A DNA stretch of 8,395 bases from Paraphysomonas bandaiensis (GCA_965644295.1 CBFFRP010000480.1:1-8395), one strand, 5' to 3'; positions 1-8,395 are shown, counted from the stretch's first letter. Numbers and translations: made by a program. The notes: a model not told the origin generated them from the letters alone.

Positions 1-39
1 AGAATCTGTTGCAACAACTGATCAACGGCATCCAACTGT

Positions 40-60
40 AAAAGAGGAAAGCAAGGGTAG
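40..60 (+). other. Polypurine tract before long LTR (also at 3007-3027)
   Basis: AAAAGAGGAAAGCAAGGGTAG directly abuts TGTAAC. Confidence 0.7.
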
Positions 61-1615
61 TGTAACGCTGTGGCGTTCAACTATTATTCCATCGTACTCT
101 CTACTCTCTAGCGGGCATATAATGGACTACGGATGTCGAGAATGAGTGTGACTCACACCAGCGGTGATATGTTGTATTTTATGCATACTATGTTACATCT
201 ATGCTTGTTTGTACACTACACTATGTGATTGCACTGCTTATTATTATCATGGCATTTGTATTGAAGTAGTGTTATGCATGTATCACCTATACCATACACT
301 CACACCTCATACACATTACATTCACAATACATCACACCACACCACACATATATGACATATATTATACACCTTATCCATTATTGCATACATACTACACTTC
401 ACACTTATAACTCTGTATGCTGTATTGGTATTGATTCTTCTCTAGCTGCAGATAGGAGGAATTAGATATCAATATAGTGCATTCACATTCATCCATACCT
501 TCTTCTATCTCTATATGTATGTGTATTACCATCTATATCCATCATCACACTCTTGACACCTTGCATACTGTATGGCATATAGTACATGTGCTTGTATAAG
601 ATCCAAGTCTTGTCATAAGCACGATCTGCATGTATACATGACATGAATATGACGTATGTATGGTATATGTACACATTGTATCACCTGAGGGTCCATTCAT
701 CTTGTCATGAGGCCATTGGTACTCTCTGTGTGGTCTTCATATTCCTGTGGAGCGCAGTGGACTCTAACTTCTCGTGTTCATGATGTTTGGAGCCGTGACT
801 TGCGTCAGACGTCTGTCATTATGGACTTGACTAGGGTGCCAAGTGTCATCGTCTATCTCTTACTGGTTATGGAGCGTTGGCATGTATCTACAATGAGCGT
901 TAAGAGCATCATCCTCTTCAGTCTCTTCTCAACTGTTGTTTTTATCGTATGCTGTATTTACTGTATTTGCTGTATACTCCTGGATGCTACTCTGGTATGC
1001 GGGATGTATATGACCTTGTACTCCTCTGTATATACGATTGTATAATGCTGTATATGATTCTGAGTATACAGTATTGTGCTGTTGTATATTTGTATATGGT
1101 CTATAGTACAGTGACGGTATATTGTTGAGTACAAGCATATGATTGGACAATATTCTCATTTTGGTGTGCTGGAGACTCTGTTGGTTGGAGTTGGTCTTCA
1201 TAGCATTCTACGGGAGTGTTCCAGAAAACTGATATGTCCACATAATCAACCAAATCTTGTACAATCTTTTGTAGAATATTGTTCTAGATGTTATTGTGTG
1301 CTTCTAGATAGCTTGTAGAACATGAGTGGTTCTTTGTGAGTTATTTTGTGTTCTGCTTGCTGTTCAGATTTATGTTATAGTGCCTTACACCTTAACACGT
1401 AGTTAGAGGTGTCTAATTATAAGAGCTTGGGGGTGCCTGAGCTGTTGTAAGGCTTAATAACAAACATATTCTTCTTCTTCTCTTTATTGCTTCTTTCTTA
1501 CATTTCCTTATTATTCATATATAGTGGCTGCACCCGGTGTGATACCCCGGGTTTGGTTAAAGTAATTATCTTGTGTTTGCGTGGGGCTCCGTCAAGACCT
1601 TCGATGAGACCTACA
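61..1615 (+). mobile_element. Putative long LTR (LTR-A, about 1555 bp) of an LTR retrotransposon
   Basis: Starts TGTA after a PPT and ends CCTACA followed by TGG. It has a TATA-like TATAAG at 1418 and a pyrimidine-rich, U5-like 3' part. The 3' end is inferred from this single copy. Confidence 0.62.
1219..1423 (+). promoter_or_regulatory. Putative LTR promoter: degenerate heat-shock-element-like boxes plus TATA (copy at 4186-4390)
   Basis: TTCCAGAA 1219, TTGTAGAA 1269 and 1313, TTCTAGAT 1282 and 1302, TATAAG 1418. Confidence 0.4.
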
Positions 1616-1631
1616 TGGTGCTGGTGGATGC
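1616..1631 (+). other. PBS-like sequence after LTR-A
   Basis: TACA|TGGTGCTGGTGG. TGG is complementary to a tRNA CCA end. The cognate tRNA was not verified. Confidence 0.45.
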
Positions 1632-1674
1632 AGACATCGCCAAGAGGTATCCCCGCATTGTTGAATAGCATAAC

Positions 1675-1695
1675 AGAGAGAGGGGGAGGGGGCAG
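1675..1695 (+). other. Polypurine tract before LTR-B
   Basis: AGAGAGAGGGGGAGGGGGCAG abuts TGTAACG. Confidence 0.78.
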
Positions 1696-2002
1696 TGTAA
1701 CGCCGAGGCGTCAAACTAATCACATACCACAAGACCAGTGAGGTTAATAAGCTACAAGGGGAGCTCTAGTGGACTATGTGTGTATGTACAGCCTGCATCT
1801 TATCTTCGGATGAAGACACACTTCACTCTCGGATTACAAGTGCTGCTGTTTTTGCTATATGAGCAATGGAGAGATCTGATTGGTGTACTCGGGTTAGCTA
1901 TAGTAAATTTACTAGCGAAAAGCAGCTTTGAAATCTGCAGATTTTGATAACATTATTGGAAGGATATATCTACGTCAAGTTAAGACAATAGTCCCCGTTA
2001 CA
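1696..2002 (+). mobile_element. Putative short LTR (LTR-B, 307 bp)
   Basis: Perfect 7-bp inverted termini TGTAACG...CGTTACA, a PPT upstream and TGG downstream. The first 25 nt match the LTR-A start at 20/25. Confidence 0.7.
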
Positions 2003-2622
2003 TGGAACTGGCCAGCATATCTACGTTCTCTAAGAATGTGGAGGAGATTTTTGATAGACTGGAACGAAGACTGGATCAACGTCTTCAGAGGATCTCTCAG
2101 AGAACTCAAGACATGATCAGTCTACTTGTCTTAGTCTCCAAGATATGTGGGGAGATAAGGAAATCTGAACAGATGCAAGAGAACTCATCAGCTATGCCTG
2201 TTTCTTATCCAGAGGTCACTACCACCGCAATGGCCGAACAGATCCAAGAAGAGTTTTGTTCACCTCAGCAGGAGCTTTGTATGGAACCTAAGGCATCTAT
2301 GGTTCAGGAGGATGGCAATGCAGCCTCGCGGGTGTCAATTCCAGGGACAGAGACAACCACTTCTAATGCTAAACGGCTTCCTATCCACGTCCGAGTTCAA
2401 GGGGTACAGCAGCTCCGGTCCTCTCAACGTGAGATGATTTGTTCCAGTTCCGGGAGGTCCAGCTCGGTCTCAACTGAGAAGGCTTTAGGCCCTGACTCTA
2501 TACATGGAGTAGTGGGTAATTTCATGAACACTCCAGGATTTATCCAGCCTTTTACTTGGGTGATGACAATTTTTGAGGAACATGGTCCGGGACCGCCTTA
2601 TCTGGTCACAATCCAATGTTAA
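2002..2622 (+). CDS. Hypothetical 206-aa ORF in the retroelement internal region (gag position), predicted N-terminal coiled coil
   Basis: Longest ORF in this block. It begins at the LTR-B/PBS junction and has a heptad-like stretch VEEIFDRLERRLDQRLQRISQ. No gag zinc knuckle or pol motif was seen. Confidence 0.35.
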   Translation: MELASISTFSKNVEEIFDRLERRLDQRLQRISQRTQDMISLLVLVSKICGEIRKSEQMQENSSAMPVSYPEVTTTAMAEQIQEEFCSPQQELCMEPKASMVQEDGNAASRVSIPGTETTTSNAKRLPIHVRVQGVQQLRSSQREMICSSSGRSSSVSTEKALGPDSIHGVVGNFMNTPGFIQPFTWVMTIFEEHGPGPPYLVTIQC

Positions 2623-2938
2623 TTCAGGATTTCGGCTTATACAGGGCTTCTGAATGCATTTCGGCAGACATGTCCTGTTCATGCACATGTGTATCGGGTT
2701 CTCACGCATATTCTCCGGAAGATCTTGATCACGTATATTGCTCAGCCTATATCCGAAGTGAATGGTTCAGTTTTATGGAAAATAGTTCAGTAATTCAAGC
2801 ATTAATATGATGAGGAGAGCAGAAGAATTTCATCTAGAGTATTGTTCAGTCAGAAGATTTTCAGGATTTGCTATTCAGTGATTTTCAGTTGGGGGCAACA
2901 CGAGATAATGACTGATTTCATAGCATGGTTGACATGGT

Positions 2939-2963
2939 GAGAAGGAGAGAGAAAAGAGGGCAA
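2939..2963 (+). other. Polypurine tract
   Basis: GAGAAGGAGAGAGAAAAGAGGGCAA abuts TGTAC. Confidence 0.65.
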
Positions 2964-2976
2964 TGTACAGCGGCGC

Positions 2977-4528
2977 TGCAACAACTGATCAACGGCATCC
3001 AACTGTAAAAGAGGAAAGCAAGGGTAGTGTAACGCTGTGGCGTTCAACTATTATTCCATCGTACTCTCTACTCTCTAGCGGGCATATAATGGACTACGGA
3101 TGTCGAGAATGAGTGTGACTCACACCAGCGGTGATATGTTGTATTTTATGCATACTATGTTACATCTATGCTTGTTTGTACACTACACTATGTGATTGCA
3201 CTGCTTATTATTATCATGGCATTTGTATTGAAGTAGTGCTATGCATGTATCACCTATACCATACACTCACACCTCGTACACATTACATTCACAATACATC
3301 ACACCACACCACACATATATGACATACATTATACACCTTATCCATTACTGCATACATACTACACTTCACACTTATAACTCTGTATGCTGTGTTGGTATTA
3401 ATTCTTCTCTAGCTGCAGATAGAGGGAATTAGATATCAATATAGTGCATTCACATTCATCAATACCTTCATCTATCTCTATATGTATGTGTATTACCATC
3501 TATATCCATCATCACACTCTTGACACCTTGCATACTGTATGGCATATAGTACATGTGCTTGTATAAGATCCAAGTCTTGTCATAAGCACGATCTGCATGT
3601 ATACATGACATGAATATGACGTATGTATGGTATATGTACACATTGTATCACCTGAGGGTCCATTCATCTTGTCATGAGGCCATTGGTACTCTCTGTGTGG
3701 TCTTCATATTCCTGTGGAGCGCAGTGGACTCTAACTTCTCGTGTTCATGATGTTTGGAGCCGTGACTTGCGTCAGACGTCTGTCATTATGGACTTGACTA
3801 GGGTGCCAAGTGTCATCGTCTATCTCTTACTGGTTATGGAGCGTTGGCATGTATCTACAATGAGCGTTAAGAGCATCATCCTCTTCAGTCTCTTCTCAAC
3901 TGTTGTTTTTATCGTATGCTGTATTTACTGTATTTGCTGTATACTCCTGGATGCTACTCTGGTATGCGGGATGTATATGACCTTGTACTCCTCTGTATAT
4001 ACGATTGTATAATGCTGTATATGATTCTGAGTATACAGTATTGTGCTGTTGTATATTTGTATATGGTCTATAGTACAGTGACGGTATATTGTTGAGTACA
4101 AGCATATGATTGGACAATATTCTCATTTTGGTGTGCTGGAGACTCTGTTGGTTGGAGTTGGTCTTCATAGCATTCTACGGGAGTGTTCCAGAAAACTGAT
4201 ATGTCCACATAATCAACCAAATCTTGTACAATCTTTTGTAGAATATTGTTCTAGATGTTATTGTGTGCTTCTAGATAGCTTGTAGAACATGAGTGGTTCT
4301 TTGTGAGTTATTTTGTGTTCTGCTTGCTGTTCAGATTTATGTTATAGTGCCTTACACCTTAACACGTAGTTAGAGGTGTCTAATTATAAGAGCTTGGGGG
4401 TGCCTGAGCTGTTGTAAGGCTTAATAACAAACATATTCTTCTTCTTCTCTTTATTGCTTCTTTCTTACATTTCCTTATTATTCATATATAGTGGCTGCAC
4501 CCGGTGTGATACCCCGGGTTTGGTTAAA
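2977..4528 (+). repeat. 1552-bp direct repeat, copy 2
   Basis: Matches 10-1561. Identity stops abruptly after GGTTAAA (4528). Confidence 0.97.
3028..4528 (+). mobile_element. Second LTR-A copy, 3'-truncated by about 54 bp
   Basis: Near-identical to 61-1561, then replaced by unrelated sequence. The missing tail (GTAATTATC...CCTACA) does not reappear in the window. Confidence 0.65.
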
Positions 4529-4529
4529 C

Positions 4530-4713
4530 TGTGGCGGCAGTTCTGTTCAGCCTGGTTCGAAACCCTATGCCGCCACATAGAAAGCGTTTTTCTGAAAAAA
4601 AATGGAATTCAAATACTGTTAATGCTAGGCTTGGACCACATTAACACGCTATGAGGATTCCAAACCATTTTTGGGGGAATTCCTTTACAACAATGGTTTG
4701 GAACTCTCATAGC
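4530..4713. other. Cluster of consecutive inverted repeats (stem-loops)
   Basis: TGTGGCGGCA 4530-39 / TGCCGCCACA 4568-77; AGAAA/TTTCT 4579-93; TGTTAATG 4617-24 / CATTAACA 4639-46; 22-bp stem 4648-69 / 4692-4713 with 20/22 Watson-Crick pairs. Confidence 0.9.
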
Positions 4714-4848
4714 AGCCATTTTGCTATAAAACAAAACGACAAAATCCCAATTTTTATATAAAAACCTTGATTTATGCAAAAACCCTATAAAACCTTGAAG
4801 TCTAATTTAATTATAGAATATAATAATGTTGTTATATTATATATATAG

Positions 4849-6129
4849 ATGTCAATTTATACAAAGCCAAAAACAAGCAATAACGCTATTTTTAATGCAG
4901 AAAATCATAAACAGATTGAAACAGCAAGAGTAATATTAAATATGGCGGAATATGCAAGATTAGACAATGCTAAATTTACAGCGAACGTTGAAATCTTGAA
5001 TGGTAATAACTTAACCATAAACAATGAACCCCAAACAGTTGCTTTCACAGATTCAAAAAATAATATGTTGTCAGATATGAATACAAGATTATTAAACCTC
5101 ACTGAAAATGAAATACAAACATTAGACGGTATAAATACCAATGAAACTATACAATCACAATTAAATACATTAACAGCAAGTTTTAACGGTCTTGATGCTC
5201 TTCAAGATATAGACTTAATTAATATACCTAATTTACAAGCGGATGTTGCAAATTTAGAAGCCCAAGATATAACATTACAGAACAATATTAATACTAAACA
5301 GAATTTAATCGACGTGAATAATAAGTTGGATTCTTCTTTAGTTTATAACTATACATTTAATGAAACGGTTGATAATATAATTTCTAACCTGAATGCTCAA
5401 ATAGCAAGTAATGATACAGATATAACAAGCTTACAAACTCAGATTACTAATAATGACACTGATATAACAAGCTTACAAACTCAGATTACTAATAATGATA
5501 CAGATATAACAAGCTTACAAACTCAGATTACTAATAATGACACAGATATAACAAACTTACAAAGTGAAAAACATAATTTAATAGATGTAAATAATAAACT
5601 TGATTCTTCTTTAGTTTATGACTATTCATTTAATGAAACAATTGAAAACTTACTAAGTATAATAGACGGCAATATTACAACACTTGAAAATACAAAATTG
5701 AATTTAACAGGCGGAACAATGACAGGAAATATAACAACTAAACAAATAAGCGAATCAATCAGCACAACATATACGTTTTCTTCAAATGTGTTGACATATA
5801 ATTATAATAATGGTTCAATTATATATTTTAATGGTTTAACAAGTGATACAAATTTTGAACTTGATATAACGAATATTAATTCAAGTAACTTAACAAATAC
5901 AAGTTTTACAGTTTCTGTTTTAATAGACACATCAACATATAAGGCATATATAAACACTTTAAAAGTTAATACAGTTTCAGAAACGTTGAATGTGTCAGGA
6001 GGACTCGCAAATATTAATGTAGACGATGTGACAACATCAGGAGCAATATTGCAAACAATAACAATAATATATACTAACTCAGGAACATCACCAACGAAAG
6101 TAATATCAAATATAGGTTCATATTATTAA
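4849..6129 (+). CDS. Viral fibre/spike-like protein, 426 aa (coiled-coil shaft, beta-rich C-terminal head)
   Basis: Long intact ORF. It carries the fibre-type motifs EIQTLDGINTNETIQSQLN and KLNLTGGTMTGNI, 14-aa heptad repeats NDTDITSLQTQITN, and a duplicated K(Q/H)NLIDVNNKLDSSLVY module. Confidence 0.8.
   Translation: MSIYTKPKTSNNAIFNAENHKQIETARVILNMAEYARLDNAKFTANVEILNGNNLTINNEPQTVAFTDSKNNMLSDMNTRLLNLTENEIQTLDGINTNETIQSQLNTLTASFNGLDALQDIDLINIPNLQADVANLEAQDITLQNNINTKQNLIDVNNKLDSSLVYNYTFNETVDNIISNLNAQIASNDTDITSLQTQITNNDTDITSLQTQITNNDTDITSLQTQITNNDTDITNLQSEKHNLIDVNNKLDSSLVYDYSFNETIENLLSIIDGNITTLENTKLNLTGGTMTGNITTKQISESISTTYTFSSNVLTYNYNNGSIIYFNGLTSDTNFELDITNINSSNLTNTSFTVSVLIDTSTYKAYINTLKVNTVSETLNVSGGLANINVDDVTTSGAILQTITIIYTNSGTSPTKVISNIGSYY
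5410..5562 (+). repeat. In-frame 42-bp tandem repeat, about 3.6 copies
   Basis: Units start at 5410, 5452, 5494 and 5536 and encode NDTDITSLQTQITN. Confidence 0.95.
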
Positions 6130-6315
6130 AAATATTTATTCTATTCAAAATATTTTTTCAAAATAATTTATCAAAAATATTTATTCTATTCAAAATATTT
6201 TTTCAAAATAATTTATCAAAAATATTTATTCTATTCAAAATATTTTTTCAAAATAATTTATCAAAAATATTTATTCTATTCAAAATATTTTTTCAAAATA
6301 ATTTATCAAAAATAT
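6128..6315. repeat. Perfect 45-bp tandem repeat x4 plus a partial unit
   Basis: AAAAATATTTATTCTATTCAAAATATTTTTTCAAAATAATTTATC at 6128, 6173, 6218 and 6263. Confidence 0.97.
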
Positions 6316-6357
6316 ATAAAACAATTTAAAAAATATTATATATATATATTATATATC
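6315..6357 (+). promoter_or_regulatory. Putative viral promoter: 19-bp box plus TATATA leader
   Basis: TATAAAACAATTTAAAAAA at 6315-6333 is identical to 6980-6998. Both lie just upstream of an ATG. Confidence 0.6.
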
Positions 6358-6525
6358 ATGCCTAGAGAAATTAAAAGAAAGTGCAAACATTGTGATAAAA
6401 CTATAAAAAGAATAAACAATGATTGGAATTCAAGAGAATATCATAAGAAATGTTATAAAGAGATTGAAGAGATGAAGTCAATGATTATTAATATGGAGAA
6501 ATATAAGAAGATGTATAATCTATAA
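6358..6525 (+). CDS. Small putative zinc-binding protein, 55 aa (CxxC...HxxC); not in the ORF track
   Basis: MPREIKRKCKHCDKTIKRINNDWNSREYHKKCYKEIEEMKSMIINMEKYKKMYNL*, preceded by the shared promoter box. Confidence 0.75.
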   Translation: MPREIKRKCKHCDKTIKRINNDWNSREYHKKCYKEIEEMKSMIINMEKYKKMYNL

Positions 6526-6588
6526 ATTTTGTTGTCATTATAGTTAGTTAGTATTATATATACATTTGTATATGTAACGTTTCAAAAA

Positions 6589-6912
6589 TTAATAGCCTTG
6601 TTCAGGTTTAATATAAGTGCCATGTTGGTCATCATATTCTTTTAATAGCTTTTGTCTTTTCTCATAAGCTTTAGTTTTTTCAAGTTGTTCACTTGGTAAG
6701 TTTCTATTAATAGGATTCTTATAATATATTTGTTGTCTTTCACTGAGAAGTTCAACTTGTTTTTTTCGTTTCTGTATTTCTAAGTCTTTGATTAAGGCTT
6801 TATATCCTTCAATTTGTTTTACTATGTTTGATATTTCAGTTTGAACTTGAGGTTTCTTTGTCTTTGGTATTGCGAAGAGTTCATTTTTTAAACATATAAC
6901 AAAATCTGCCAT
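6589..6912 (-). CDS. Hypothetical basic coiled-coil protein, 107 aa
   Basis: Intact ORF in stop-rich AT DNA, K/E/Q-rich helical composition, TATATA just upstream of the ATG. Confidence 0.75.
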   Translation of the reverse strand: MADFVICLKNELFAIPKTKKPQVQTEISNIVKQIEGYKALIKDLEIQKRKKQVELLSERQQIYYKNPINRNLPSEQLEKTKAYEKRQKLLKEYDDQHGTYIKPEQGY

Positions 6913-6979
6913 AAAGTATATATAATAATGTTTATATAAAAAATATAGTTTTCAAATTTAATAAAAATAATAATTTTAT

Positions 6980-7026
6980 TATAAAACAATTTAAAAAACT
7001 AATTTTATATATATAATATATATATT
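6980..7026 (+). promoter_or_regulatory. Putative viral promoter: 19-bp box plus TATATA leader
   Basis: Second copy of TATAAAACAATTTAAAAAA, 28 nt before the ATG at 7027. Confidence 0.6.
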
Positions 7027-7422
7027 ATGAAAACTTTAACAATTGACATTGAAGAAATTGACAGTTTATATTCAAAGCTACAAAATGATAAAGAAATAAG
7101 ATGTATTGTATTTGAATGTGAGAGAATGAGAGAACTAAATTTAATTGATTTTGAAATTGGTTTATCATATGAAGAAGAAGAGGAAAAAGATATATTATAT
7201 GAAAAAAACAATAGAAAAATCAATAAAGTTATTTCAAGATTTATTCCCAACACTATAACACATCTAAGTTTTAATGATGAAATCCACCTTGATGAACGTG
7301 CATATAATTATTTACCTCAAAGTATACTTGAAATTCAGAATGAACATGGTGATACAATAACTAGAGATGAAATTAAAGAAATCATTAAAACTACAGAAGA
7401 ATCTTATGCAGGTTGTTTTTAA
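7027..7422 (+). CDS. Acidic hypothetical protein, 131 aa, with degenerate FNIP-like repeat(s)
   Basis: Intact ORF. FIPNTITHLSFND and YLPQSILEI resemble the IPxSVTHLxF core of FNIP repeats. Confidence 0.7.
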   Translation: MKTLTIDIEEIDSLYSKLQNDKEIRCIVFECERMRELNLIDFEIGLSYEEEEEKDILYEKNNRKINKVISRFIPNTITHLSFNDEIHLDERAYNYLPQSILEIQNEHGDTITRDEIKEIIKTTEESYAGCF

Positions 7423-7427
7423 ATATA

Positions 7428-7718
7428 TTAATTTCCAATAACTTTATCAGCGTTCAAATGTTTCAAAGCGTCTGTACTATGTGATTTAAAAGGGTTATTT
7501 GTTTTAGCATTAAATACTTTAGTTTTATTTTTTTTATTATTATTAAAATAATTTAATGATGATACAGGGTCATTACTTGTTTTAATGTCTGTTTGATTTG
7601 ATTGATTTTTTTTTAACATTTCAAAAGGTGATATTGCCTTATTAAATGTAATAACGTTTTTGGAATTCTTCCCTACTTCTTCTGTAGTTGAAGTGTAAAC
7701 TTCGCTTCCGTAGTTTTC
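7428..7718 (-). pseudogene. 5'-truncated viral-type CDS (C-terminal 96 aa)
   Basis: The listed 63-aa ORF stays open for 33 more codons upstream (ENYGSEVYTSTTEEVGKNSKNVITFNKAISPFE-M) to a stop at 7719-7721, where the composition changes. There is no TATATA leader at the internal ATG. Confidence 0.6.
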
Positions 7719-8019
7719 CTATCACATACGCACTACGTATTATGAATGAATGGATAGTATGTCACATGCATGCATATCCATTCATTGTCATCACACATTG
7801 ACATGTTTACATCAGTTGTCCTTAATATATAATATACCTTTTCTCCTCTAAAGTACTTCATACTTTAACTTGGTAGCAGATGGTTACGATAACCAACCTT
7901 ATTTATTTGTTTGTTCGCCTCCACATCACTGGTGGAATGACGGCATCAACATATGAAACAAGCCTGTCATCTGTACACAGACGAAATACACGATGTGCTT
8001 CCTTTGAACTCTGCTGTTT

Positions 8020-8140
8020 CTCGAAAACTCGAAAATCCGGGGGTTTTTGGAATCAATTTCCGGAAAATATGTACCTTTTTGTTCAAACTCGGAAAATCGT
8101 TTTTTTAAAGAGAATATTTCCGGAGAATATGCATTTTTTT
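8020..8140. repeat. Imperfect short duplications
   Basis: AACTC(G)GAAAATC occurs twice and TTTCCGGA(A/G)AATATG...TTTTT occurs twice, about 60 bp apart. Confidence 0.55.
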
Positions 8141-8395
8141 TGGGCACTGAAAACAAATCGACAGTCTGTCTGTTCCTTGTTTGTGTTCCTGCAGTGTGTA
8201 TTATATGACTTTAAGGAGATGACAGTGTATACACTAATGCACATGTCCATTCCAGCCAGTCTGATTTTGATGACTTGTCTCCACCATGTGTGCTGATTTT
8301 GACACCTTGAGACGCTTTGTCCGGTGATACACCAGGAGTGGTTAGACTTCATGTTGATGGCTGTGAATATTCTTTCGATGACTACTATTCGCCTT

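Follow-up and report, generated by a model that had tools for sequence, protein, structure and literature searches.

The segment from about 4.75 to 7.68 kb of the window (the whole 8,395-nucleotide stretch of DNA that was analysed) is very likely an endogenous fragment, at most 3 kb long, of a small dsDNA virus of the polinton-like virus (PLV)/virophage supergroup, lying in a retrotransposon-rich stretch of a probably marine eukaryote, conceivably an animal. The fragment is the accessory and virion end of the viral genome. Besides the genes for a fibre-like protein and for three small ones, it retains the 3' part of a lipase-like hydrolase gene. The virus lineage has so far come from marine metagenomes only. 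Here it is found within a eukaryotic genome between retrotransposon repeats, an arrangement previously described in several protists.

Genes and limits of the AT-rich block

GC content is 13-29% inside the AT-rich block versus 35-50% in the flanks. The block had been placed at 4529-7720 in a first-pass annotation; the block is real, but the viral DNA has narrower bounds. According to the GC profile and a promoter-like motif, viral-type sequence starts at about 4725-4800, and the left limit is placed only within this range. On the right, contig alignment ends viral homology at 7684, where seven independent contigs all cease to match. The block contains the following features:

4726-4848, plus strand: AT-rich non-coding stretch 5' of the fibre-like gene (TA-rich promoter-like motif, repeats, composition)
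4849-6129, plus strand: intact gene for a 426-aa fibre-like protein (homology of the C-terminal domain)
6123-6315: AT-rich tandem repeat with a 45-nt unit present 4.3 times (copies 99% matching)
6358-6525, plus strand: intact 55-aa ORF (Cys-x2-Cys ... His-x2-Cys pattern)
6589-6912, minus strand: intact 107-aa ORF, helical or coiled-coil, function unknown (homologues on contigs L013, L014 and L016-L018)
7027-7422, plus strand: intact 131-aa ORF, function unknown (identity 86-89% to the Tara Oceans proteins P0028-P0030, 46% to P0031)
7428-7684, minus strand: remnant of an alpha/beta-hydrolase (phospholipase/lipase-like) gene (homology to full-length relatives)

As first annotated, there are five compact ORFs (426, 55, 107 and 131 aa, and the 3' gene remnant). 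Homologues elsewhere were found for four of the five, which argues against chance ORFs. The TA-rich motif of 4726-4848 recurs in the block's remaining intergenic regions.

The fibre-like protein has a mostly beta C-terminal domain of about 145 aa and an N/T/I-rich coiled region in which a 14-aa repeat occurs four times (a 42-nt DNA repeat at 5409-5563); AF2 modelled it with low confidence (pLDDT 53). P0002, P0003 and P0004 share 48-49% identity with the C-terminal domain; they are the products of genes on contigs L001, L002 and L012 that adjoin a gene for a tail-collar-domain protein. In L001 and L002, an A32 ATPase gene follows the fibre homologue and the tail-collar-domain gene. The 45-nt repeat overlaps the 3' end of the fibre-like gene, starting in its last codons, and extends into the intergenic region; both it and the 42-nt repeat, already noted at first pass, are real.

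The 55-aa ORF may encode a small zinc-binding protein, judging from its Cys/His pattern. Over 38 aa, it shares 95% identity with the beginning of contig L014, and its Pfam matches were sub-threshold only. The 107-aa protein is 100% identical to its homologue on L014, 79% to that on L013 and 48% to the product of the lipase-adjoining gene of L016-L018. For the 131-aa ORF, a match to the FNIP repeat remained below the cut-off (Pfam E = 0.006).

The lipase-like gene carries a single truncation, by which the 5' part with the nucleophile motif is absent, and the retained part has no internal stops or frameshifts. Full-length relatives have 228-241 aa and PF26363 (Phospholipase-like) among their precomputed domains. 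The viral DNA stops on the right where this remnant stops, so that the block does end in mid-gene, as had been proposed. Differences from the metagenomic copies are mostly synonymous, with dN/dS of 0-0.2 in two genes (0.2 in the 107-aa gene) and 0.55 in a third. Together with the intact ORFs, this makes the block look young, in agreement with the earlier view of a recent, undecayed insertion.

Metagenomic relatives and class of the virus

The 107-aa, 131-aa and lipase genes have DNA identities of 78-95% to seven independent marine metagenome contigs, which come from at least six ENA assemblies, Tara Oceans PRJEB4352 among them. All relatives in the searches made were metagenomic, and no cultured or named virus was returned as a close relative. 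The suggestion of an undescribed virus holds to this extent, but the lineage is large and recognisable, and its capsid protein family comprises over 1000 clusters at 50% identity.

L015, the closest of the longer relatives, runs on past the break in the window, with the remainder of the lipase gene, genes for a 179-aa, a Peptidase_C5 and a 262-aa protein, and the terminal part of a capsid homologue. The Peptidase_C5 protein (166 aa) matches the Pfam family (adenain) with E = 6e-5 and 23.2 bits (cut-off 21.3); as the match is one short stretch, support for a protease is moderate. Homologues of this adenain-like protease are found on L016 (40% identity) and L026.

On the 17-kb contig L016, the lipase gene adjoins the homologue of the 107-aa gene. 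The contig also encodes a Pox_A32 ATPase, a protein with rve and Chromo domains, a DUF5906 protein, and proteins of 574 and 293 aa. The rve (E = 1e-10) and C-terminal Chromo (E = 2e-8) matches lie in one 386-aa protein, an integrase that is known from this one relative only and is absent from the window. The 574-aa protein (P0062) is 65% identical to the partial gene on L015. Its model (pLDDT 92, pTM 0.91, from a 76-sequence alignment) matches the major capsid proteins of Sputnik (E = 9e-13) and mavirus (E = 1e-12), as well as many other double-jelly-roll capsids, including those of nucleocytoplasmic large DNA viruses (NCLDVs). Sequence-only searches of Pfam and PDB gave no match for it.

The Pox_A32 ATPase is present on L001 and L002 (Pfam E = 2.6e-14) as well as L016. 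Between L001 and L016, identities in the capsid module are 48% for the A32 ATPase, 36% for the putative capsid protein and 38% for a conserved penton-like protein of 291-293 aa. The gene for the latter, which has no family or solved-structure match, adjoins the capsid gene in L001, L016 and IMG/VR contigs. Nine IMG/VR contigs (4-26 kb) contain a lipase homologue; capsid or penton-like genes were found in six of these, the ATPase in four and the protease in one.

On sequence comparison and the predicted capsid fold, we assign the block to a PLV or virophage-type element, as the first-pass annotation had allowed, not to a phage or giant virus, since its relatives carry the same genes plus A32 ATPase, protease, integrase, helicase and capsid. 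No hallmark virus gene was found within the window, so that its assignment depends on relatives with two to three genes in common. As no contig covers 4529-6405 at high identity, the left bound and the link of the fibre gene to the rest of the block are without independent support. The modelled double-jelly-roll capsid protein and the A32 packaging ATPase on the relatives' contigs are marks of the supergroup; those of virophages and polintons are the rve integrase and, as opposed to most PLVs, the adenain-like protease. A strict polinton/Maverick is not indicated: no protein-primed family B DNA polymerase appears on the fetched, incomplete relatives, and L016 has a DUF5906 helicase-type protein instead.

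Origin from an NCLDV (one of the options originally listed) or a bacteriophage is very improbable. The AT-rich compact genes with TA-rich upstream motifs, the sub-threshold FNIP match, the weak likeness of the coiled-coil fibre repeats to phage proteins and the NCLDV capsids among the fold matches would all fit such an origin. However, the relatives' contigs, at 13-26 kb, have one capsid module each, with ATPase, protease, penton-like and capsid genes, plus the rve integrase, and the best solved-structure matches of the capsid model are virophage capsids. NCLDV core genes (polymerase B, D5 primase-helicase, VLTF3 and others) are absent from the window and the relatives' contigs. A phage collection contained no real match to the block or the lipase, and PHROG matches were weak and limited to the coiled-coil region.

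Flanking repeats, junctions and origin of the arrangement

The flanks of the block were annotated as follows:

10-1561, plus strand: direct repeat copy 1 (51-nt purine-tract leader plus LTR-A)
1696-2969, plus strand: LTR-B, a second LTR-like unit (purine tract, then TGTAACG; TACA end; 206-aa ORF)
2977-4528, plus strand: direct repeat copy 2
4529-4725: spacer, 38-60% GC (composition, hairpin, inverted repeat)
7685-7875, plus strand: repeat X, 33-45% GC (match to the end of L014; right bound 7868-7875)
7876-8395: right flank, 35-45% GC, in which viral homology does not resume

The two copies of the 1552-bp direct repeat are 99.4% identical, with 10 mismatches, and identity is lost sharply at 4528/4529. 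By canonical marks, LTR-A extends from 61 to 1614 (TGTAACG...TACA), followed at 1615 by a primer binding site (PBS)-like site starting with TGG. The TGTAACG motif follows purine tracts (40-57, 1676-1694 and 3007-3024) at 61, 1696 and 3028; the bounds of LTR-B are inferred from such motifs alone. The unit 10-4528 thus has the marks of an LTR retrotransposon, namely direct repeats, TG...CA ends, a PBS-like site and purine tracts. The two longest ORFs, of 112 aa (LTR) and 206 aa (interior), have no protein-domain match, which makes the left element non-autonomous at best. A Ngaro/DIRS retrotransposon was rejected, as the sequence after 4528 repeats nothing before 2977 and no recombinase ORF is present. 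The observed repeat limits (10 and 1561) are, however, about 51-53 bp off the canonical LTR limits.

The spacer contains a hairpin with a 10-bp stem (4530-4577, z = -3.3) and an inverted repeat with 26-nt arms (4648-4713). It has no relatives, including in IMG/VR, and contains no tRNA; its Rfam match is weak and non-significant. The spacer, from 4529 to about 4725, is not evidently of viral origin. The first-pass annotation had the block replace the end of LTR-A. Under the canonical reading, copy 2 (3028-4528) does lack 53 bp at its end compared with copy 1, but the spacer of about 200 bp separates 4528 from viral-type DNA, so that the two are not directly fused.

This bears on the proposed capture of free or integrated viral DNA into the LTR by illegitimate (microhomology-mediated) recombination, with deletion of the 53 bp and no target-site duplication (TSD), an origin that we regard as unlikely. 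The shortened LTR (read from its TG...CA, PBS and purine-tract marks) suits such a capture, as does the fact that no LTR resumes anywhere in the window past 4528, a point on which the earlier description was correct. Possible microhomology is offered by the 8-mer CTGTGGCG that opens the spacer (4529-4536) and recurs near the 5' end of LTR-A (68-75 and 3035-3042), but an 8-mer match somewhere in a 1.5-kb LTR has a chance expectation of about 5%. The non-viral-looking spacer also stands against capture, and the right end is explained by repeat X, not by the LTR. Moreover, the unit 10-4528 is immediately flanked on either side by the 4-mer CTGT (6-9 and 4529-4532), as would suit an inserted unit instead; the chance is about 1 in 256 per exact placement, with 9 bases of left flank visible. 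The reported lack of a TSD is therefore not clear-cut, although reading CTGT as a TSD clashes with the canonical LTR limits. The LTR array may represent a second retroelement insertion beside or into the viral element; alternatively, the LTR would have lost its end when LTR and viral DNA were joined.

Insertion of the element straight into LTR-A by a viral rve-type integrase is quite doubtful. Position 4529 would then be close to the true left terminus, with 4529-4800 as a non-coding end before a terminal fibre gene, and an integrase with a C-terminal chromodomain, as on L016, would favour repeat-rich heterochromatin. Yet the fibre gene is not terminal in L001, L002 or L012, and 4529-4725 has no relatives and differs in composition from the remaining element. 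The window holds no inverted copy of 4529-4800 (the other end would lie outside), and a repeat search found no inverted repeat joining 4529-4800 with 7600-7900. Neither a terminal inverted repeat of the viral element nor an integration footprint was seen within the window; since the block breaks off within a gene on the right, at least one true terminus lies outside.

On the right side, repeat X is probably the short terminal repeat of another retroelement. Just past it, at 7877, lies a TGG-starting PBS-like site. The 0.5 kb visible has no reverse-transcriptase or gag ORF, so that the retroelement LTR label is one that we infer. The flank 7876-8395, with a 138-aa ORF that has no Pfam match and no exact record elsewhere, represents host DNA or else internal sequence of the X-bearing element. 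Positions 7753-7868 recur inverted, with 95.8% identity, at the end of the Tara contig L014, where X adjoins this virus lineage at another point; L014 is a short-read metagenomic contig and might itself be misjoined. Such joining at another site suggests that X acts as a mobile element with the virus as an insertion target. The evidence on this side favours insertion of a retroelement-type repeat into the viral element, and capture into the LTR by illegitimate recombination, as first proposed, has not been borne out.

The same finding argues against a contaminant chimera. An assembly artefact, in which the assembler would have linked host repeats, where a perfect repeat ends, to reads from a free virus or from a virus-infected contaminant, is improbable for the window as a whole. 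The left junction coincides with the exact end of a 1552-bp near-perfect repeat, a classic misjoin site, the composition changes sharply, and none of three window ORFs checked by exact sequence is recorded on another contig. Against an artefact, the independent Tara contig joins the virus lineage to X (96% identity) at another point and in another orientation, which implies that X and the virus share genomes in nature; the right junction cuts a viral gene and is not at a genome terminus, and seven relatives agree on this one sharp bound. Chimeric assembly is thus less likely for the right junction, whereas the left remains a candidate.

For the endogenous PLV/virophage-type fragment that we favour, chromosomal entry could have occurred via an integrase resembling the relatives' rve-chromodomain enzyme. 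Chromodomain integrases of retrotransposons steer insertion to heterochromatin, and such targeting would account for a landing site among LTR repeats. Later, insertion of the X-bearing retroelement would have interrupted the lipase gene. The remaining viral sequence may lie beyond the X insertion, outside the window, or may have been lost by recombination between dispersed repeats.

Comparison with known endogenous viral elements

Endogenous NCLDV fragments are likewise repeat-embedded viral DNA of deviating composition, and silencing and small-RNA production have been discussed for giant-virus inserts. Unlike these, the block and its relatives share only the capsid and ATPase folds with NCLDV core genes, on contigs of 13-26 kb.

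The alpha/beta-hydrolase of PLVs is thought to be packaged in the particle and to aid entry. In PgVV-14T, the lipase and a tail-fibre-like protein are virion components (bioRxiv 10.1101/2022.07.28.501842). PLVs of the PgVV/Gezel type are likewise small AT-rich dsDNA viruses with a double-jelly-roll capsid, minor capsid and A32 ATPase (bioRxiv 10.1101/2022.07.28.501842; PMC4642659). They too encode a putative lipase of the alpha/beta-hydrolase type and a long tail-fibre-like protein, are found in marine plankton and can be integrated in host genomes. However, PgVV has a tyrosine recombinase and a TVpol polymerase-helicase (PMC4642659; bioRxiv 10.1101/2022.07.28.501842), whereas the relatives of the block have the rve-chromodomain integrase and the adenain-like protease. 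No search returned named PgVV proteins, and the likeness is one of shared features, not of phylogenetic placement.

Mavirus-type virophages and the endogenous mavirus-like elements (EMALEs) of Cafeteria burkhardae offer a second comparison; EMALEs are also low-GC endogenous elements in a higher-GC genome (PMC8547959). Like the present lineage, they encode an rve integrase, a cysteine protease and an ATPase, and have a capsid with a fold near Sputnik and mavirus, although sequence identity between the mavirus capsid protein and that of the relatives is only about 10%. In contrast to EMALEs, the relatives have a DUF5906-type helicase, and a protein-primed polymerase was not seen. EMALEs are likewise broken by recurring retrotransposons, in their case Ngaro (PMC8547959), with split direct repeats (A1-B1A2B2) unlike the LTR-like repeats of the window.

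Retrotransposons inside endogenous PLVs or virophages are on record for Guillardia (PMC4642659), Cafeteria (PMC8547959) and Cymbomonas (PMC10675990). In recombinase type, the viral lineage differs from what is reported for the PLVA and PLVB groups of Cymbomonas (PMC10675990), and the retroelements of the window, without pol or gag ORFs, appear non-autonomous, unlike the LTR elements of Guillardia and Cymbomonas. Nevertheless, Guillardia theta (PMC4642659) and Cymbomonas tetramitiformis (PMC10675990) have the same layout, with often fragmentary PLVs, also of lower GC than their flanks, near or interrupted by Copia or Ty3/Gypsy elements.

Genes of the AT-rich block and their metagenomic relatives

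GC content drops from 38-60% to 12-30% at ~4725-4740 and rises again past ~7690; the spacer at 4529-4725 therefore lies outside the AT-rich DNA. The block encodes proteins of 426, 55, 107 (minus strand) and 131 aa, plus a minus-strand frame that is open from its stop at 7430 to 7718. The 55-aa and 131-aa genes have in common an upstream motif with a TA-rich run at its end, just ahead of the ATG, and the 426-aa gene has it in part. Tandem repeats are present as a 45-nt unit (4.3 copies, beginning in the final codons of the 426-aa gene) and as a 42-nt unit inside that gene. Scanned against Pfam and PHROGs, the five block ORFs and the flanking ORFs had sub-threshold or coiled-coil matches only. 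Three ORFs of the window, looked up by exact protein sequence, had no record.

Close copies were found in metagenomes, and all copies were compared in unaltered form. The 131-aa protein has relatives with 86-89% identity on Tara Oceans contigs (PRJEB4352), and DNA matches cover 6530-7684 (91.5% identity to contig L013) and 6406-7391 (94.7% to contig L014), with 78-88% DNA identity for five more contigs. Position 7684 is the common end of all seven contig alignments. The viral block thus has narrower bounds than the first-pass annotation gave it, beginning at ~4725-4740 instead of 4529 and losing homology at 7684. The 107-aa gene has a dN/dS of 0.21 relative to L013 and differs from L014 at three positions, all synonymous; the frame ending at 7430 gave values of 0 and 0.06, and the 131-aa gene 0.55. 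As the differences are mostly synonymous, the copies must have diverged as working genes, and the copy in the window has been exposed to decay only briefly. Scans of IMG/VR proteins returned no relatives of the 131-aa or the 107-aa protein.

Comparison with L013 identifies the truncated minus-strand frame as the 3' part of an alpha/beta-hydrolase gene with a GHSLGG nucleophile motif. Full-length relatives of this lipase have 228-241 aa and are classified as Phospholipase-like (PF26363) in precomputed annotation. Loss of the 5' part is the one truncation in the window copy, which is otherwise without defect. A DNA pattern derived from the lipase gene had 0 matches in IMG/VR. On four ENA contigs from four different assemblies (L021-L024), the lipase homologue is called with 124 aa, starting just before the nucleophile motif and with an intergenic gap upstream; this may be a shortened or split gene variant of a sub-lineage with 78-84% DNA identity to the window.

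The 426-aa protein has a beta-rich head behind a coiled region. Homologues on the metagenomic contigs L001, L002 and L012 have 48-49% identity over the C-terminal 145 aa, and two of them, P0002 and P0004, align across nearly the full length with 30% identity. The genes on these three contigs are its only real homologues. All three adjoin a gene for a tail-collar-domain protein, and an A32 ATPase gene follows on L001 and L002. Coiled region, beta-rich head and tail-collar neighbour together fit a putative fibre. The AF2 model of the C-terminal domain had a pLDDT of 53 and was therefore too poor for a fold search. IMG/VR matches to the fibre protein (L003-L011) chiefly cover the coiled repeat region, with only L003 extending weakly into the C-terminal domain (28% identity), and were left out as evidence of kinship. 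A second scan, with the C-terminal domain as query, yielded two more contigs, both short. The PLV-like contig L001, which carries one of the fibre homologues, also encodes Ribosomal_L7Ae-family and Tudor-domain proteins (629-964 and 1091-2125), cell-like genes that are unusual for so small a virus.

Lipases of polinton-like viruses (PLVs) and virophages have been proposed to be particle cargo that opens host membranes at entry, and PgVV-14T virions contained a putative lipase as well as a tail-fibre-like protein (PMC4642659; bioRxiv 10.1101/2022.07.28.501842). The retained lipase and fibre genes may have corresponding roles, which we take over from this literature.

Hallmark genes on the relatives

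The closest longer relative, L015, continues from the lipase into a 179-aa gene, a gene for a 166-aa protein that matches the adenovirus-type protease family (E = 6e-5, narrowly over the Pfam cut-off), and a 262-aa gene. At its terminus lies the end of a protein with 65% identity to a 574-aa protein of L016. On this 17-kb contig, the lipase gene adjoins a 48% homologue of the 107-aa gene of the window. L016 also encodes a Pox_A32 ATPase, an rve integrase with a chromodomain and a DUF5906 helicase-type protein, and a module of its genes (ATPase, 624-aa, 163-aa, 293-aa, 76-aa and 574-aa) is collinear with L001. The integrase gene (5097-6257 of L016) encodes its chromodomain at the C-terminus, as in chromoviral retrotransposon integrases, and may bias integration toward heterochromatic repeats.

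At 50% identity, the family of the 574-aa protein comprises 1055 clusters. The model of this protein, built from a 76-member alignment, reached a pLDDT of 92 and a pTM of 0.91, and has its best matches among solved structures in the major capsid proteins of Sputnik and mavirus. In the set of predicted viral structures, the model matches the double-jelly-roll capsids of virophages and giant viruses as well as others of this fold. Fold comparison alone succeeded: the PDB yielded no match when the putative capsid and penton proteins were searched by sequence profile. A lipase homologue occurs on nine viral contigs of IMG/VR (4-26 kb, 28-40% GC); capsid or penton-like homologues are present on six of them, the ATPase on four and the protease on one. 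In the phage collection, the sole match was 87 bp long and fell in the repeat region; the lipase had none.

The block is therefore a piece of a small double-jelly-roll virus from the polinton-like/virophage supergroup. It is through gene sharing and synteny with these relatives that the block is assigned, the hallmark genes themselves being absent from the window. The lineage is known only from metagenomes and combines a protease, rve integrase and capsid fold of virophage type with a lipase and a fibre of PLV type. The view of the first-pass annotation, that the block is a recently endogenised PLV- or virophage-type fragment of a virus without a described cultured member, is upheld.

Repeats at the two junctions

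The repeat X, which begins directly after 7684 and extends to ~7868-7875, has 95.8% identity to an end of L014, where it is reversed. In L014, X joins the viral DNA elsewhere and via its other end. The two X-virus junctions are independent, are less than 0.3 kb apart and occur in different copies and in opposite orientations. With both ends forming junctions with the virus in two copies, X shows the behaviour of a terminal repeat whose mobile element would have inserted in the virus. A site starting with TGG follows X in the window; the label "PBS-like" refers solely to a TGG located immediately behind the end of a repeat. No viral sequence resumes after X up to the end of the window, and thus the remainder of the virus lies beyond the insertion or was lost. 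A viral terminal inverted repeat was ruled out for X, which has the wrong orientation and composition and cuts a gene. The IMG/VR search with a DNA pattern from X gave 0 matches. Further into the right flank, 8040-8140 contains two imperfect copies of a ~45-nt motif (CCGGA[A/G]AATATG...).

To the left of the virus, the following units can be delimited.

Repeat units of the left array
10-1561 and 2977-4528: direct repeat of 1552 bp, 10 mismatches
61-1614: LTR-A, putative canonical limits
1696-2969: LTR-B, second LTR-like unit, between the two LTR-A copies
3028-4528: putative second copy of LTR-A, without 53 bp

All 10 mismatches of the direct repeat fall inside 272-503, a CA/TA-rich low-complexity stretch, with the other ~1050 bp identical; this clustering could reflect gene conversion, slippage-prone sequence or mixing of copies by the assembler. 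A purine tract followed by TGTAACG occurs at three places (61, 1696 and 3028), and 61-1614 has a TACA end with TGG directly after it. On this canonical reading the second LTR-A copy is indeed shortened, as had been noted at first pass. LTR-B agrees with LTR-A in the first ~20 bases and in the purine tract ahead of them, and contains a 206-aa ORF (2002-2622). Neither this ORF nor the other of the two longest in the 4.5-kb array (112 aa) matched a protein family. The mini-interiors separating the LTR units are just 81 and 58 nt long, like those of non-autonomous LTR elements of very small size. A Ngaro-type structure of the left element was ruled out because a B repeat is absent; a simple tandem duplication was ruled out too, the second unit being incomplete. 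The 3' end of LTR-A, used as a DNA pattern, had 0 matches in JGI metagenomes.

The limits of the direct repeat are offset from the canonical LTR limits by 51-53 bp, on both sides and in the same direction. Immediately outside both repeat limits stands the 4-mer CTGT (6-9 and 4529-4532), and the 8-mer CTGTGGCG that opens the spacer (4529-4536) recurs near the LTR-A 5' end (68-75 and 3035-3042); these recurrences are either a target-site duplication, microhomology or chance. The CTGT makes the earlier statement that there is no target-site duplication less certain, while conflicting with the canonical LTR limits; the visible left flank comprises nine bases, too few to reconcile the two readings.

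Repeat identity ends abruptly at 4528/4529. Ends of perfect repeats are where assemblers err, and the join is placed at just such an end, with no independent sequence for or against it. The virus had been described as fused into the LTR; this may need correction, since a ~200-bp spacer that is not AT-rich lies between the two. The spacer contains a hairpin at 4530-4577 (10-bp GC-rich stem, -21.6 kcal/mol, z = -3.3), whose tRNA-like look was dismissed in favour of a plain hairpin, and an inverted repeat at 4648-4713 with 26-nt arms and a GGAATTCC centre. ARAGORN found no tRNA in the spacer and Rfam gave no significant match, the mir-960 model on the 4648-4713 hairpin being weak (E = 0.23, far under the gathering score). 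No relatives of the spacer were found, with 0 matches to its DNA pattern in IMG/VR.

Comparison with known viral inserts

Endogenous virophages and PLVs are thought to give protists heritable protection from giant viruses, and work is in progress to map what becomes of them among the transposons of a genome. The locus adds one more fragment of a lineage known only from metagenomes, here tied to a host genome, and its practical value would lie in linking this virus lineage with a host. We consider it rather unlikely that X represents an LTR-type retroelement family preferring this virus lineage, while the virus, by means of its chromodomain integrase, settles in retrotransposon-rich heterochromatin, the two nesting reciprocally. 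If true, such nesting of virus and retroelement would be akin to that of EMALEs and Ngaro elements in Cafeteria, arrived at from different parts and in a different marine eukaryote.

In Guillardia theta, integrated viral DNA is interrupted by a Copia-like element (PMC4642659), in Cymbomonas tetramitiformis by a Ty3/Gypsy element (PMC10675990), and the Ngaro elements of Cafeteria burkhardae have a preference for viral DNA (PMC8547959). As viral inserts interrupted by retroelements are already known from these three genera, the general picture is unchanged: their PLV and virophage inserts are fragmentary, lower in GC than the host and interrupted by retrotransposons, and the locus described here is another such case.
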